NCBI RefSeq assembly: GCF_964204645.1
Contig: NC_134030.1
Coordinates: 8,475,122-8,539,121, forward strand
Direction of reading: 5' to 3'
DNA: 64,000 nucleotides
Origin: Tubulanus polymorphus
Taxonomy: Eukaryota > Animalia > Nemertea
The number at the start of each line of letters is the position of its first letter. Position 1 is the first letter of the stretch. The notes under the pieces were generated by a model. It was not told where the DNA came from, did no database searches, and was given only the letters and a program-made list of their open reading frames with translations. Positions 45,690 through 56,241 of the stretch are shown piece after piece. Both the position numbers and the translations under genes were made by a program.

Positions 45690-45845
45690 AGGCCGTTTGG
45701 CTATGGGCTTGGACTGGTTGTTGATAATCTCGCGAGAATGGCGCTAAATATGAACTGCGAATAAATTCAAAATATCACGGAAATACCTTGTGTTTATATT
45801 GTTTGCTTATCCGCTATAAAGTTCCGATAAGAAATGTGGTCATGA
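45690..45845 (+). repeat. Solo partial TIR copy of the 45889-46665 element
   Basis: Direct repeat of ~45895-46050 (ATCTCGCGAGAATGGCGCTA...CCGCTATAAA). Confidence 0.8.
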
Positions 45846-45888
45846 ACAGCTGTGAATAAATTCTAGGCCTAATTAGTAGGGAGACACA

Positions 45889-46665
45889 CACAGGGGTTTG
45901 GCGATGGGCTTGGATTTTATTTCCGGGTTTTTGATGATCTCGCGAGAATGGCGCTACATATGAACTGCGAATAAATTCAAAATATCACGGAAATACCTTG
46001 TGTTTATATCGTTGATTTATCCGCTATAAAATTTCGACAAACAATTGGTCGTTAAGAATCATTATCAGACGGTCGACACGCTACTATATATAATAACAAG
46101 GGATGAAACGCCTTCAGAGTTGTGCCAGCCAGAAAGTTGGGACAGTCACGTGACATTCTGATGATGTCATCACATTTAAAACTTTAACATGAAAAGTTAA
46201 CATATTCACAGACCGATATCAATTGTCAGATTATGATTCATATGAAATTAATAACTAATAAAGAATAAATTATGATCAAATATATAATTCATAGAAAAAA
46301 ATGCATTTGAATGTAAGTTATTCTCAAATATTTTTCGTATCATAGTTTCCATCTTAGATGCTTCGGGTTTGCATTCAGTCAAATAAGAAGCGCGACTGTC
46401 ACGTGACTGTCCCAACTTTCTGGCTGGCACGAATTGAACTGCGTTTCATCCCTTGTGATTTTATATAGTAAAGCGTGACGACTGTCTGATGATGATCCTT
46501 AACGACAAATTGTTTATCGGAACTTTATAGCGGATAAATAAACAGTATAAACACAAGGTATTTCTATGATATTTTGAATTTATTTGCAGTTCATATTTAG
46601 CGCCATTCTCACGAGATTATCAACAACCCGGAAATAAAATCCAAGCCCATCGCCAAACCCCTGTG
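45889..46665. mobile_element. Non-autonomous DNA transposon with ~265-bp TIRs and 8-10-bp TSD (hAT- or MULE-like)
   Basis: CACAGGGGTTTGGCGATGGGCTTGG...GTCACGTGACA (45889-46154) inverted at ~46397-46665; flanked by (G)GAGACACA(C) on both sides. Confidence 0.85.
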
Positions 46666-47499: not shown

Positions 47500-50400
47500 A
47501 TGGCAGATTTGGGCGCATTTGGACTCGCGTTTCTCGCATTGGTGATACACGATGTAGCTCCGTTTGTAATCTCGTCGCATAATCATAGCAAGCATTTGAT
47601 ATCGGCCGGAGATCGCGAGGGCGACGAACGTTTGAGTTGGGGTGTACAAATTGTCAACCACGAACGATTCACCGACAGCGGCGCCGCCGTAGCAGCGAAG
47701 ATAGCCGAGAATTTGGATTTGAAATTTCGCGGAAAAATTGCCGATCTGCCCGGGGTGTTTCGTTTATCGCATCGGTCTCATACTGACGAAAAACAAACGG
47801 GCTTTTCAGCGGGAAGTTTACCGGATTTCGTCGAGTTACGAGATTCGATACAAGATCGGTTTCAGAGCGATGACAACGTAGAATGGTTCACGCAGTTTAT
47901 TTGGCTGAAACGAGTCGGTCGAACGTTGCCAGCTGCCGTACGCTTCAACGATCCGCAATTCAAGAATCAGTGGCATCTCGTAAGTGTCACGCTTAAGAGA
48001 CGGTTCTCATAGTTGAGAACGAACGAGAACATTTTGGTTCCGAGGAAAAAAGTGTTCTCTAAGGGAGGTGTTGATTTGTGGAGCGAATTCACTAAGAGAT
48101 GTTTTGATTTATCTTTGAAATGCTAAAGATGTTGATTAGACATTAAAATGATTTCATTGCCGGCCAATAAATTCATTAATTTGGCCTATAGAGTAAATCT
48201 TAAAAGCATAATCGTCTTTCCTTCGTTATGCACATTTGCTAGTTTGATTAATCAATGATGTGCCCTCGCTTCAATGTAGTACGTACCGATATATATGACA
48301 TGTATGTAATGTTATAGATTACTGTATACCGTTGATTGTCAAAATTGAGCCAGTTGAATACCACTTTCAAACTTTTGGTTTTGTTGGTAACAGGTAATAA
48401 TCCTCGGGGTAAATGTTCCCCTTCTAGATTTAAAAAGTTTCAAGTTCGGTGTGGTGTTGGTCACAATATTCACCTCGGATAATCTATGACTTTTATTAGC
48501 ACGCTACACACATCAAAAATGATATTATTGTAGTGTTGAAAATGGAGAAATATAGTTTAAGACTAATAATAAAATATCTACGGATATTTGTATTCATTGA
48601 TATTGTTGTAAAAAGCGTTATCCAGTTATTATCAGAATTTTACACTAGTTTGATAGAATTTGAAGGCATTTTTACCTATGGGGATATTTACCGGGTGAGA
48701 TTATTACCTACAATGCGTTTTGTTTTGTGGTTTGAGCCTATGGCGACACATTTGCATATGAATATTGCAAGTGACATGTGTTAGAAACAGCATCACAACA
48801 CTTGCCATACAAACAGAAATTTGATACGTAAGCTGAGTGTCAGCAAAACAATACATAGGTTTTCCCTGCTGTCAGCGAAAGAAAGTAACCGGTATGGTAA
48901 TTATTGTGACTGTCAAACTATGCTAGCGTGATATGGTATCTGTTTACCCGCATTGACTGTCTAAATATCACAAGCGTAATACAGGGTTTCTGTTTACACG
49001 CATTGAAGCAATATTATCGGCATCAATAGAAAATCTTACACCACGTCTACATTTAGTGAGAAAAGACTAGGAATAAGAATTAATATTTGCTGACCTTTGG
49101 CTTTATAAAAGCTATAACAGCAGCTATTGTTTGATAACAGCTCTTCGCTGAAGGCTACTTCCCCCTCGGAACGGTGTTTATATTGCTTCATTGACAAAAT
49201 TATTTGATCATAAATAGTCTAGCCGTGATTTGCTGAAGAAACTGAAACCTTATGAAAAACAACTGATTTGTCGTAAGCCAATTATAAATGCTATTTCAGT
49301 ACAATGGTAAAAATCGTAGATATGATATCAATGTGACTGGTGTATGGATGACGTACAACATTACAGGGCGTGGAGTCACTGTCTGTATTGTGGACGATGG
49401 TAAGGTCCTTTATTTATAGCTTGCCCTATCAGGTTTTAGATCAGTCCGCAAAAAATGTTTTTGTTTTTCTCCGCTCGAATAAAAGATCATAAGGAGAATA
49501 GATATCTATGGCTGACATTTTCGTTTAGAATTTCAATCAACTTAATGATTGTCCGATTGATTTACTATGACAAGGACAGTTCTCTGCTTTTATATTCTTA
49601 CATTTGATCTCAAATTCTCTGCGCAATTTCATTTTCAATCTTATTTTGAGTCACTTTATTCATACAAAGTGGTCGGTGGTAGAGGGTGGGCTGGCCCTTT
49701 CACGGAAAATCGCAGAGTCTTGCAGACTGGTCATGTGCGGGTAGTACAATACAGCACGCTTCAAACTGTTGACAGGCTACTTCATGACTGGACATCAACT
49801 GACTGTCTATGTTTTTGGGGATTTTTTAGGTGTAGAATGGAGGAACCCGGATCTGGTGTCAAGATACGAGCCCGATGGGAGTTGGGATTTGAATGACGAT
49901 GATCCTGATCCATCACCTCACCCCGCAAAAAGTAAGTAGTAAAGTTACTGGGTAGTCGAGCTAAAATAACTTTTGCTGTAAGTGTTTTATTAGTTGATTG
50001 ATGGGTTTGTTAGTTGATTGATTTATCATTGATTGGTTTGTTAGTTGATTGATTTATCATCGATTGATTGGTTTGTTAGTTGATTGATTTATCATCGATT
50101 GGTTTCATATTTTATTGATTGGTTTGATAGTTGATTGATTTTATGATTGATGGTATTGTCAGTACATTGTCACTGATTGATGATGGCTTCATTAGGTTTG
50201 TTAAGCATTAGGGACTTATCGATTGATTGGATTAATTCATTGGAGCTATCATTGATGAATAGGTTTGTCATTCGATTGGCCGATAATCCATTTGCGTAGT
50301 ATTCAATATTTTAAAGCACATTGGTTTCCAGATCAGAATTCACACGGAACAAGGTGCGCTGGTGAAATAGTCGCTGCCCCCAATAATAACTTCTGCGGTG

Positions 50401-53400
50401 TGGGCGTGGCATATGACGCGCGGATGTCTGCCTTGCGCATGATTGATGGCCGCATTTCTGATTACTTGGAAGCCGAAGGTTTCCTGTTTAAACTCGATAT
50501 TAATGACATTTCCAGCAATAGGTATCAATATATTCCTACATCCATACCCAAAAACTTACCTTCGTCGTCAATCATAGGCAGAAAGCTGTTTCTATGAGCA
50601 ATATTCACTTCGGTAGACCTAGTAATTTGGTGCGTGGTAGACTCTAGTAAATGCCTCATACACCTTGCACCTTTTGCCTGTAACCATTCTTAAAAAGAAC
50701 ATACCCAGTTATAAAATGGTCGATGGTCGTCACGGTAATTTGATCGTTGATTGGTCATCTTTAGCACAAAAAATGCTATTTACAGCAATACCGGAGAACA
50801 AATATTCTCTTTAAGATATCGCTGTTAGTTCATCAGAATTGTAATTTGGATAACTGGTATATGATATTATTGAAGCTGTTTCTCAATTCGACAACTTTGA
50901 AATCAACAAAGTGCTTATCATCAGTTGAAACCAAAATAGCTTTATTCCTGACAATTGTGAATGATGGGTGTAGCTAATATCTTTTCATTTATGTCCGGTG
51001 TATTTTTAGAAACCAATCAACACGGTACCCGGTGTGCTGGGGAGGTGGTAGCCACGGCCAACAATTCATTCTGCGGTGTTGGTGTCGCTTACGAAGCGAA
51101 AGTTTCGGGAATTCGATTGTTAGATGGGCCAATCACGGACAGCCTCGAGGCCGAGGCATTTTACCATAAACTAGATATAAATTTCATTGAAAATCTGAGG
51201 TAAAATTTTAGTAGGGATTTATTGAAATGTGGGAAGAAAAAGCGAATGATGGATTTGAATTCGAAATTATTAGTCTACCATGGTTTTTGCATCAGGCCTA
51301 TATATGTGATTGTTTTTAGCTGGGGTCCAAGCGATGATGGAAAGACAATAGACGCTCCACATGTTCTAGCTCAGGTACGTGTCAATAGTACCATTCACTC
51401 AAACATTACAAGGCTACACACGCGTGTATACCATCTATAATGGTCTGTATCCTAAATATAAATTATCATTATCCTCCCGTATCGATTCAGAAAGCACTGC
51501 AAAGAGGAGTAACGCTTGGTCGCGGCGGGTATGGTACTGTTTACGTCATACCAGGTGGTAATGGAGGAATGCATAAAGACAATTGTAACTACGATGGCTA
51601 CGCTAATTCCATATATACTGTCACCATCAGTACGTACAACATATTAGCAAATCTCATGCTGATATCAATCTGCTACCTGCATAGCTAGACTGTTATTCAC
51701 TTTCAAATGACATTGCCTTGGGTCCAGACAAGAGACCTGATTAAGTCTTGATGACAATTTTTTGTAAAGATGGCAAAGTACAGACCGCAGATTGATATCC
51801 ATATCAAACATTTAAAGGCCTGTTGCTACTTTGATATTATAAATAAAATGGTTCATTCAAACCCGACAGATGCAGTTGATGAACACGGAAGAACGCCATT
51901 TTATGCCGAACTCTGCGCGGCGAGTCTTGCCTCAACTTTCAGCGGTGGAAACAACATGTTTTTACGCAGAATCGTAAGTTTGACTCGACTCAATGGACTA
52001 CTACGATACGCAATCCAGATCTGCTAATTCTATATAGAGAATCCCGCGCTAATATAACGAAAGATGCAGTCCGTAAGCCAATAATTTATTCATTCGACGT
52101 TTTAACTATAGCCCAATAGTCATCTTAAGGAATACTCAGGGGTCATTCATTTATTACATACGCATTAGGGGAGGGGTCAGTGCAATTGCGTACTGTAATG
52201 CTTAATGTATATGAAAAAATGGTTGATTTTGCATACAGAGGGGGAGGGGGATTCAAATTTTATGCGTACGTAATAAATGAATGATCCATCAGGAATATTT
52301 CTGTATTCCTTGAGGTGACTATTAGGTGATAGTCAAAACGTCAAATGATTAGCTTTAAGGAAAACCTTTCGGACTTTCGTTTCATTTTCCTCTTTCATTA
52401 TGTTAGCGTGTAATTCTCCATAAACTGCCAATTCTTCATTTATTTTCAAATTGATATGATTTTCAGACGACGACGGATTGGGATTTCGATGGGGGAAATG
52501 GCTGTACAAACAAGATGTCGGGAACGAGCGCCTCTACGCCGATAGCTGCCGGCATTATTGCGTTGATGTTGGAGGCGAAACCCTGTTTGTCGTATCGCGA
52601 CGTTAAATATATCATTATAATGTCCGCCAAAAAAGTAAGCGGTACACTGAGTATTTAAGCATATCTGCTGTGCACTGGGTATTTTAGAGGGGAGAGGATG
52701 TGCACCACGTCATTAACAAATCAGCCTGGACTTAGACTGGCTTGAATTGAATTCAATTATCAATATATTAATTTTCCAGTGATTGATCATTAATATTATA
52801 TTTCATTTATATAATATCATTAATTGTTGGCAGTATTAAGCAATTATTGTACGTTCACCTGTTTTTCAAGGCATTGATAAACTTAAATTAAGTTTTCTTG
52901 TTTCAAAACGTTCGCCCAGCGGCTTGGAAGTGGTATAGAGATGACTCGCGTTCATGTTGTAGGTAGACGATATTGATGGACAGTGGATCACTAACGAAGC
53001 CGGCCTCCATCATAACCATTTCATCGGGTTCGGTATCATTGACGCGTTTCGCGCGGTTTCTGTGACTAAAATCTGGACGCCGGTCCCGATGCAAGTTCGG
53101 TATTCTCATCAAACGGTGACAGTCGAGAAAATGCTTCCGAAATATCCGATGGAATACGGCGGTACCGTTGTCGGTAAGTTTCAATGAATTTAATCACAAG
53201 GTTCATTTCATCTTGAAATCAAATGAATACCGTGTATGTTTTGTAATAAAAAGCATTTTGTAGATGGGGATTTGTAGCATAGATTTTAATTTTATTTAAA
53301 CATTGAATTGAAAAGGATTAACTTAATACAGTAGAACCTTTTTCAGCTTTTTTCAATCGCGATTTTCATTTAATTCAGATGCAATATTTGGTCCATTTAT

Positions 53401-56241
53401 CCTGGAACCACGTAAACAATTATTCACAATTCGGATTTTACTTAATTCGAAATAATCTGGACAGTCCCTGGTCATCCGAATTAAGCGAGTTCTGCTGTAT
53501 TTTTTCTTTCAAACTGAGGATCAGGGAATTCTTATTATAATTCATCAAATATTGATATATCTTGTTTCAGTACGTGAAGAAGATTTAATCGGTATCAGTT
53601 TGTTGGAGTACGTTCAGGTCACGGTGACGGTGAAAACTTATCGTCGCGGTAACCTGGTTATTTATCTCAAATGCCCTAGCGGAACAAAATCGATACTTAC
53701 CTCCGTCCGACCCAAAGATAAGTAAGTTGAAATGAGAAGCGTTCAATTCGCTTAAGTCACTTGAGTACCTCAAGGCTTTTTCGTGCTATCAAGATAATTG
53801 ACCCCTATATTTTCTTAAATTTTAATTATTTAATATTTGGATTAATATAATAACAGCACCTAAATACTAACAACTACCTGTTTGCATAATTCCTATGAAT
53901 TATGCAAAGCAAACTAGTGCACTTACTTAGTTTAGCTAATTAATGCATTTGAGACGTTTGGATTACTCTGGGTTCAGTTCCTAAAAGTTTTGGTTTAGTT
54001 ATTACTTGTCAATTCATGTTTGAGGTCAACAATTCGAAATACAACTGTTTTAAGCTTAAACATTTCTATCAAACTTGACCGTGATTGCAAGTTATTAATA
54101 ATTCTTAAGTTTCCTTTGATTTTGAAAATGAACTACAATCTTGACAAGGGATCGAAAAATGGGGGTCATTCGTCTTGCATTGCACTACAGCCATGACAAA
54201 CTGTCCAAAAACAATGCAATGACAATGTTCATAGAAGCTTTAGATAACTTAGGCATGTTATTGAAATGTGATGATTCCACTTTTGTCGCAGTTAGTCAGA
54301 AGATTGTAATTAGCTTATATATATTCTTTTCAAGGACTGAATTTGGTCTAACTGGTTGGACGATGACGTCTGCTCGTTGTTGGGGAGAACGACCTTACGG
54401 CGAATATACAATAACAATCATTGATAATGGTAATATTTATCATTCATTTTATGAGCTTTTTTCTCATAGATCTCCATCTATTATTGTAATTCATTGTTGA
54501 AATTTTGTTTCGATATTCAGATGAGGAGATAGATTATCAATATGGCCAAGTTTCATCGTGGCAGCTACATCTTACCGGAACGCCATTAACTTACGAACAA
54601 TTTATGGAACGAAGAAGGTAAATGCCATGATTATTAGATGAAAGACTATGAATTATATGCAATAGTGGTAGGGTGGGGTCGATTTTTGAATTGGATTTGG
54701 CTGTTAATGACAGCCTTCTCATTTCCGATGACGTCAATATTCAATTTACCTGGTAATAATGATGTCTCTTTGAGAAACTGGCCCCTAATTAAGGTTAAGC
54801 TATTTATCTAAAAAAAGATAAATCTCTTTTAACACTCTCTCTCTTTGTTTAGGCTGGTAATGGATACTATAGCTAATGGCTTTGTGAATCAATCCAAAGA
54901 AACTCCATGTTGGTCAGCTCCAGCCGGACCTGGGCTATACGAATTGGAGCCAATGTCAGGAAGATTGCTCAAGGTATTTTACATAATGTGGGCTATCATT
55001 GTGAAAAAATTCAACGCGCATGATCACAATGTTTATAGGCAGCCAAAGTCAGATATGTCAAGAGAGTGCAATATTGTCACTTCTCTGCGGCCGGGAATAA
55101 CTTGTACAATGAGGACTTAACATGACCGTGGCAATCAAGGATTCCCTTTGGATCCACCGGGTTTGCGAGTGTACATTCAGACAACACCCGGATTTCTTCT
55201 CAGATTTAAACAAAATCTATCCGCAATTTTGCAAATTTTAGGAATGATGAATGTATTTGATCAATCCAATAAAGAGACACGATTTGCCCAATGTTTCATG
55301 TGGGAGGCTGTAACTCTAAATGAAAGCTACTTGAAAATGAACTAAAGTTTGATTGTGCTGTCCTCACCGGGTCTTTATTGCACATTACAATATTTTTCAC
55401 TTCTGTTTATATGACCGAAGCCTCAAATCCTTTCCAACCACCAATTGCCTATTAACTCATGAGCTGCGTATTTCAGATGTTGGCATTCACCTGCATATTC
55501 TGCCTCATTATGCTCTGGTATGAAATGATGGAGTATATGTGCTGCTACGCGGAAGAAAAACAGGAGTCGTCGCGTCAAATGCGTCGCGTGCGTCGTGCCC
55601 AGAAGATGGGTCTGATCGACGTTCACCAGGCTCCCGAGTCATCGCCTTCAACGACGATTAATGAACAAACTCGATTGTTGGCACCTGCTGGCGCCGAAGA
55701 AAATATCGCGATGTCGGCGATCGATTCGAATCGGCATCGAGACGGCGGCGCGGATCATATCAGCGAACGAAATCAGTTGCTCGGTGATGAGGGCACTAGT
55801 CACGAGTCTATAGATGATGGTTTCGTAGACTTCAATAGTTCGAATGAATTATGCAATGATAATTGCTACAGTGGTGTACGATCAGAGAGCAAAAATGTAA
55901 ATTATATTTCTACGTGTACTTCTAGTCTTTCACAAACTTCAACTGCTGCTGAAACAAATCAACAAATTTGTCTTCCTTTAAACATCGATAATTCATGTAA
56001 TGAGGCGTCAAGTTCTTCCAATTCGTTTGTCAACGATTCTCAGGACGATCGTCAAGGTAGTCTAGTCAAAGATGGGCGGGGAAATCTTGTTTCTAATATT
56101 CCCTCGGCTCAAAATAACGATAATGACTCAGTGATCGAAAACATTCTTAATATGCCAGATAATGAAGGCTTAGTGGGCGTAGACCTTCTTTACGGTTTAT
56201 CGAAAGAGGAAATTGAATTGAACATGAATCTTGCCAAATGA
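47500..56241 (+). CDS. PCSK7: Kexin/furin-family proprotein convertase, PC7-like (signal peptide, prodomain, S8 catalytic domain, P domain, TM, cytosolic tail)
   Basis: FNDP.F..QWHL, catalytic Asp IVDDG (~49390), His HGTRCAGE (alternative exons), SWGP.DDG, oxyanion [28 protein letters not shown], Ser GTSASTP (~52520), RRGNL, CWGE.P.G, TM segment at 55477. [18 protein letters not shown] and the lack of a Cys-rich domain favour PC7. Confidence 0.88.
49990..50140. repeat. Intronic minisatellite, ~31-35-bp unit TTAGTTGATTGATTTATCAT(C)GATTGGTTTG
   Basis: 4-5 degenerate copies seen directly. Confidence 0.85.
50332..50521 (+). other. Convertase alternative exon A (190 nt, phase 1->2) containing the catalytic His
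   Basis: TTTCCAG|ATCAG...AATAG|GTATC; encodes [62 protein letters not shown]. Confidence 0.85.
51010..51199 (+). other. Convertase alternative exon B (190 nt, phase 1->2) containing the catalytic His
   Basis: TTTTTAG|AAACC...CTGAG|GTAAA; encodes [62 protein letters not shown]. Confidence 0.85.
52090..52348. mobile_element. Nested MITEs: Harbinger-like inner element (52139-52288, TCA TSD) inside an outer hairpin element
   Basis: Outer arms 52090-52135 / 52303-52348; inner TIRs GGGGTCATTCATTTATTAC / GTAATAAATGAATGATCC. Confidence 0.7.
53329..53497. mobile_element. Tc1/mariner-type MITE (TA TSD)
   Basis: TA|CAGTAGAAC...GTTCTGCTG|TA. Confidence 0.6.

Follow-up and report, generated by a model that had tools for sequence, protein, structure and literature searches.

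The window analyzed here, a stretch of 64,000 nucleotides from the nemertean Tubulanus polymorphus (assembly GCF_964204645.1, contig NC_134030.1, positions 8,475,122 to 8,539,121), contains on its forward strand a gene (47500-56241, in coordinates of the window) for the kexin-like convertase PCSK7 (PC7), in which the exon encoding the catalytic histidine is present twice in tandem, as exon A (50332-50521) and exon B (51010-51199). The duplication of the exon is genuine and old, both copies have long been under selection, and exon B is in use; the sequence makes a second version of the enzyme, containing exon A, likely. The reading that we prefer, and regard as somewhat probable, is that exon B is the default and that exon A is a minor or tissue-restricted alternative that tunes the preference of the enzyme for the P5 and P6 residues of its substrates.

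Structure and reading frame of the exon pair

The exons of the gene were placed by exon-wise mapping of the RefSeq protein onto the window. With exon B, the gene encodes a protein of 925 residues (XP_074652165.1 and XP_074652166.1, two identical proteins annotated as PCSK7-like), and this protein, which holds exon B exactly, is the top match when exon A is searched against 1.84 billion representative proteins. Its nearest full-length relatives are PCSK7 proteins, with about 60% identity, and in a tree of the segment that included exons A and B and other convertases (the human PCSK7 protein was left out of all alignments) both exons are located on the PC7/kexin side of a 100/100 branch. The RefSeq name, the best matches, and the tree indicate that the gene is PCSK7, a member of S8B that is orthologous to PC7 rather than to furin, PC1, or PC2, in keeping with the PC7-like identity proposed in a first-pass annotation made from the sequence. 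The triad and pocket residues are all present (D153, H194, S368, N295, D258, D306, E331, D233, E236, D264, and Y308, in furin numbering), and H194, D233, and E236 are found in exon A and exon B alike. A structural model of the B form (predicted local distance difference test score of 90) has a convertase fold with a P domain and overlays furin with template modeling scores of 0.87-0.94 and a root mean square deviation of about 1.9 Å.

Both exons are 190 nucleotides in length, are bordered by AG and GT, run from phase 1 to phase 2, contain no stops, and retain an intact HGTRCAGE motif; the first-pass annotation was right in each of these details. They are identical at 114 of 190 nucleotides (60%) and 39 of 62 amino acids, the matches at the first, second, and third codon positions being 42, 48, and 21 of 62, respectively, and the introns that flank them have no mutual similarity. 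Four sequencing runs were compared over 49000-53400, of which X3, recognized as RNA by its GT-AG joints, is the sole RNA run and is available at contig level. The presence of exon A without differences in unspliced contigs of run X2, together with the 60% identity of the two exons, excludes an artefact of assembly or haplotype duplication. The locus is the only one in the 268-Mb genome in which the catalytic-histidine exon is undivided; at six other convertase-like loci each match covers just one half of the segment.

As the length of 190 nucleotides does not divide by three, a message must contain one of the two exons, and no more than one, to encode the enzyme. The constitutive exon 5' of the pair (49830-49931, identified by sequence, RNA, and protein mapping) ends in phase 1 at a strong GTAAGT donor and, when joined to A alone or to B alone and then to the exon that starts at 51320, reads into the SWGP motif, whereas the joining of A to B, or the skipping of both, leads to premature stops, so that the exclusivity enforced by the frame stands as it was first described. 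Messages with both exons or neither would presumably be subject to nonsense-mediated decay, and the frame together with decay may suffice for an exclusive protein output. Steric interference between splice sites is limited to short introns, and the intron between A and B (50522-51009), at 488 nucleotides, is too long for steric exclusion to be the basis of the choice. Of the features by which homologous mutually exclusive exons are recognized, this pair has the same length and phase, splice sites that are intact, non-productive messages with both or neither, and long-term purifying selection.

The donor of exon A is not more unusual than several donors that are in use elsewhere in the gene. 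Exon B ends in FIENL|SWGP, where the norm in PC7 is DIYSC|SWGP, and this ending is confirmed by RNA that reads through to the joint 51199->51320 without differences, which excludes a hidden alternative end of exon B that would restore DIYSC.

Selection on the two copies and the use of exon A

In a Nei-Gojobori comparison of A and B, the proportion of differences is 0.86 at synonymous sites (pS), which is saturated, and 0.27 at nonsynonymous sites (pN), corresponding to a nonsynonymous distance (dN) of 0.33; 13 of 17 four-fold sites differ. The duplication is therefore old enough for synonymous saturation, and the strong divergence in nucleotides with conservation of protein that had been noted at first is borne out. 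The GC content of exon A is 0.48 (0.52 at third codon positions), compared with 0.49-0.51 in the coding exons and 0.31-0.38 in the introns. Against a profile of 129 convertases exon A scores 135.0 and exon B 133.3, and they contain two and three residues, respectively, that are never seen in these proteins. The 16 replacements specific to the lineage of A cost 28 bits, whereas 16 neutral replacements cost 110 ± 16 bits, and in 1500 simulations a cost as low was never reached; it should be noted that the proxy ancestor in this test was built from exons A and B, which gives some bias toward small losses, but the two costs lie far apart. The mild cost of these replacements relative to neutral drift indicates that, over most of its history, exon A was under selection as a translated sequence. 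Thus the sequences indicate that both copies have long been under purifying selection, as the first-pass annotation had claimed, this being a long-term statement with which a recent relaxation is compatible.

In the RNA, exon B is spliced on both sides, at 49931->51010 with a depth of 67 and at 51199->51320 with a depth of 87, and is the default exon. Exon A is present only within an unspliced contig (50138-51039) with a depth of 14, which bounds it as minor in the one RNA sample but does not imply its absence. Thus, of the four junctions by which the use of both exons was to be judged, the two of exon B are present, but neither 49931->50332 nor 50521->51320 is among the listed joints of this run, in which two joints are not displayed and rare forms are dropped from contigs. 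This result weighs against a role for exon A as an alternative exon, as do several others. The X3 contigs are unbroken through 49931, 50332, 50521, and 51320, the places where junctions of exon A would branch; no isoform with exon A is annotated in RefSeq, and the protein cluster at 90% identity has one member. In the segment tree the branch to A is longer than that to B (1.06 versus 0.58), three to five neutral replacements in A are compatible with the simulation test, so that a recent silencing would escape these tests, and no second histidine segment is present in eight other invertebrate PCSK7 loci (those of Lingula, Capitella, Owenia, Liolophura, Pecten, Lottia, and Helobdella and one further invertebrate contig).

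The main rival reading is that exon A was long functional but was recently silenced, leaving an intact relic in a gene that now makes only the B enzyme, an alternative that we consider somewhat unlikely. The lack of spliced A in the one RNA run and in RefSeq, the faster branch of A, and its departures from the PC7-invariant residues G223, T232, S234, and A239 are consistent with silencing, and the absence of stops carries limited weight here, as a copy with three to five neutral changes remains stop-free 81-88% of the time. On the other hand, no disabling lesion was found in exon A or its splice sites, nearly all residues of A occur in working convertases, and the RNA evidence comes from a single run in the form of contigs, in which rare variants are lost.

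A G/T-rich minisatellite (49985-50155) with units of 20-35 nucleotides, in the intron 5' of exon A, bears both on silencing and on the control of exon choice. It is locus-specific, four of five genome matches being at this locus, and polymorphic, and its units are complementary to the first 11-12 nucleotides of exon B (51009-51021), with which a global fold pairs it with a probability of 0.94. If young, this intronic element could loop out exon A through its pairing with the start of B and so account for silencing. The arrangement resembles in geometry that of exons 4.1 and 4.2 of Drosophila serpent, where pairing of an upstream docking element with a selector promotes the second exon (PMC4691838), but the pairing in Tubulanus is predicted and post hoc, and involves the first bases of an exon, not a selector conserved in an intron. 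In the window, exact 11-mer complements have a frequency of 9e-5 per base, giving a rough chance of about 1% for such pairing over some 120 positions near the four splice sites, and the duplex of the minisatellite with B, when ranked among windows of the gene, reaches no higher than the top 1.2%. For downstream RNA pairing that would favor exon A, the best value (-21.7) is not significantly different from that for shuffles (-19.7 ± 1.9). It is quite unlikely, on this analysis, that the minisatellite is a docking element that promotes exon B.

The preferred reading, in which exon A is a minor alternative restricted to certain tissues or stages, is drawn from the constraint on A as protein, and homologous exon pairs of this type usually give real isoforms (PMC8373072, PMC7954323). 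A stronger version, in which exons A and B serve different tissues or stages and give two convertases with measurably differing P5/P6 and P2/P2' preferences, possibly set by pairing of the minisatellite with the start of exon B, is conceivable but doubtful; if it were true, the gene would provide the first case of splicing that switches part of the catalytic core of a convertase.

Active site residues and substrate preference

The segment encoded by each exon aligns without gaps to residues 191-252 of furin, and the assignment of His194 and the 228-236 loop in furin numbering, with Arg in A and Pro in B at position 230, that was made in the first-pass annotation is upheld by this mapping. In Table 1 of PMC2820236, residues 191-194 are listed as lining P2, and residues 227-233 and 236 as lining P3-P6, with residue 198 also being included. 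Of these, N192, H194, C198, D228, G229, I231, D233, and E236 are kept in both copies. The two forms differ in 23 of 62 residues, five of which are at pocket-lining positions: exon A has Q191, S193, I227, R230, and S232 where exon B has T191, Q193, L227, P230, and T232. The other residues of the active site are encoded by shared exons, which include D258, D264, D306, Y308, E331, N295, and S368. Catalytic Asp153 is in the constitutive exon at 49300-49399, together with Asp154 (motif VDDG; protein mapping and RNA joint 49399->49830). The SWGP exon (51320-51374; RNA and protein mapping) completes the split codon of Ser253, has Ser in place of Asp/Glu257, keeps Asp258 and Asp264, and has Ala in place of Gly265. 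The exon at 51491-51629 (RNA, segment alignment, and protein mapping) carries the oxyanion Asn295, Asp306, and Tyr308, with Ala292 replaced by Pro and Ser293 by Gly, and that at 52467-52634 (RNA and protein mapping) carries catalytic Ser368, with Met replacing His364.

Since the acidic S1 and S4 residues are either in shared exons or kept in both copies, the requirement for arginine at P1 and P4 should be the same in both forms. By analogy with furin, both forms, retaining the Asp/His/Ser triad and these acidic residues, would be expected to cut after sites of the R-X-X-R type. The charge at positions 230 and 257 has been tied to P5/P6 preference, but the consequence of losing the charge at 230 alone is described as "not very clear" (PMC2820236). 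PC7 already has no acid at 230 and residue 257 of the Tubulanus enzyme is Ser, so that form B lacks both acids, as do PC1 and PC2; form A adds a positive charge at 230. With the acid at 257 already lost in the shared exon, Arg230 may further disfavor basic residues at P5 and P6. The swap of A for B is therefore likely to tune preference or rate rather than to create a second type of active site. In this respect the phrase "two active sites" by which the pair was first described is overstated, as A and B do not differ in the catalytic His or in any acidic pocket residue of the exon, and Arg or Lys at 230 is common, being found in 21 of 129 convertases and in two paralogues of Tubulanus (loci L005 and L007).

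A related alternative is that exon A is spliced in but that its product is equivalent to that of B, the pair being kept for control of expression or through leaky choice. The identity of H194, D228, G229, I231, D233, and E236 in both forms is compatible with equivalence, as is the high variability of position 230, where 15 residue types are found across the family and the effect of a change on its own is unclear, but there are 23 differences, five of them in the lining of the pocket, and it is difficult to see why a redundant copy should have been kept for so long at the risk of non-productive splicing. We consider equivalence very unlikely.

Irrespective of exon A, the expressed enzyme is unusual. 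The YSC motif at positions 250-252 is invariant in 120 of 120 PC7 sequences, but exon B has ENL, preceded by an unusual F248, and exon A has SSN; the strand containing ENL is still modeled as a strand with good confidence, although the model leans on the alignment. Changes of invariant residues comprise Y250E, S251N, C252L, D257S, G265A, A292P, S293G, and H364M; several of the replaced residues line S1, S1', and S5, about 30 near-invariant PC7 residues are replaced in all, and the whole catalytic domain is fast-evolving. Whatever the status of exon A, the enzyme is thus an informative natural variant. If exon A is used, the two forms constitute a natural pair of PC7 enzymes whose only differences are 23 residues in the region of the His194 helix and the 227-236 loop. 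Such a pair would allow a clean test of what the S2 rim and position 230 contribute, a question not settled for PC7 in the literature. If exon A is silent, the locus is no more than an ordinary remnant of a duplicated exon.

Origin of the pair and comparison with known systems

It has also to be considered whether exon A is a regulatory element, either a poison cassette, acting through the frameshift and decay of A+B messages, or a portion of a detained intron that limits the output of PCSK7. The premature stop in A+B messages would serve such a function, and the depth of the unspliced contig over exon A and the A-B intron is about one-fifth that of the contig spliced at 49931->51010. However, poison exons do not need the conservation of amino acids that is seen in A, and another intron (52635-52962) is retained in the RNA at a similar depth (contig 52608-52992, depth 15), so that the contig over A looks like ordinary pre-mRNA; a regulatory role is highly improbable. 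As a separate observation, the listed RNA pieces have little or no cover of the introns neighboring 50138-51039 and 52608-52992, reflecting either selective retention or filtering during assembly.

Exons A and B share Val203, which is seen in none of 120 PC7 sequences, and have identical borders, and the matches to paralogues, each to half of the segment, end at the position of an intron in its middle; tandem duplication is consequently the simplest origin of the pair. An origin of A from another convertase gene by insertion or gene conversion, suggested by its furin/PC1-like M226 and R230, as in L005 and L007, and by the separation of A and B in the free tree, is scarcely credible in view of these features, of the position of A on the PC7/kexin side, and of the finding that a tree constrained to group A with B is no less likely (p-AU 0.50). 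It may be supposed that the intron that splits the segment in other convertases was lost first and that the 190-nucleotide exon was then duplicated in the lineage leading to Tubulanus. Lingula, Owenia, and Lottia have the mid-segment intron, which Capitella, Liolophura, Pecten, and Tubulanus lack, a distribution that points to repeated loss.

The search of PC7 orthologues for a duplicated exon that was proposed at first found a single copy in all eight invertebrate loci, which rules out conservation of the pair across spiralians. Searches of low power for nemertean orthologues gave four candidates and one unrelated match with exon A against short proteins, the query alone with the P-domain region, and no named nemertean PCSK7 in look-ups of protein clusters; similarly, a metagenome scan of low power yielded 80 loci of at most 62% identity, none of which has two histidine motifs by motif count.

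The Tubulanus enzyme shares with the PCSK7 orthologues of vertebrates and spiralians its domain order, triad, oxyanion Asn, the P230 loop in exon B, and about 60% identity in the catalytic domain, but differs in its replaced residues and in having more than the single histidine exon of the other loci. Spiralians keep one PCSK7, which is broadly expressed in the leech (10.1101/802215); in that survey, which covers metazoan convertases, neither isoforms nor splicing are mentioned. Convertase families diversify their specificity by gene duplication. The splice isoforms found in the literature, such as PC5-A and PC5-B, come from an alternatively spliced convertase gene but are C-terminal variants that differ in sorting, with an untouched catalytic core (PMC2121096); this agrees with the statement in the first-pass annotation that convertase isoforms vary mainly at the C terminus. 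No exon switch in the catalytic core of a convertase was found in the literature searched, which excluded most subscription journals.

Like other homologous mutually exclusive exons, A and B are of equal length, fit only one per message, and have variable residues near a functional site, but the pair is not shared across phyla, and exon A is a candidate for use. Nine such events affecting catalytic sites are described in PMC7954323 and 236 human events in PMC8373072; the main texts of these papers do not mention PCSK genes or proteases. MASP1 also encodes differing catalytic parts in one gene by mutually exclusive splicing, giving MASP-1 and MASP-3 (PMC3759447), but there a whole terminal protease domain is swapped, whereas in Tubulanus it is an internal piece of 62 residues with one residue of the triad.

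Several features of related loci and of the surrounding DNA were also noted. In Owenia fusiformis PCSK7 (L011:2855-3380), about five near-identical tandem units of 106 bp lie ahead of the real exon at the homologous position. Each is composed of an acceptor site and an incomplete copy of the second half-exon, which encodes the 223-247 loop, and the array is either a recent expansion or a feature of the assembly. In the Tubulanus genome, the paralogue L005 (G000:C1:3781577-3781693) has HGTMCGG instead of HGTRCAG and DIKT instead of DIYS, and the convertase-like segment L008 (G000:C6:1843007-1843096), with ATQCAG in place of HGTRCAG, is possibly a divergent or inactive member of the family. A short, high-copy interspersed repeat is located in an intron of the PCSK7 gene at 52138-52287, where the depth in the RNA run exceeds 40,000. 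Nested inverted copies, identified by eye 5' of the gene at 45700-46660 and 46050-46500, include a fold-back pair (about 46060-46150 versus 46390-46500) within further direct and inverted copies and are probably a miniature inverted-repeat element.

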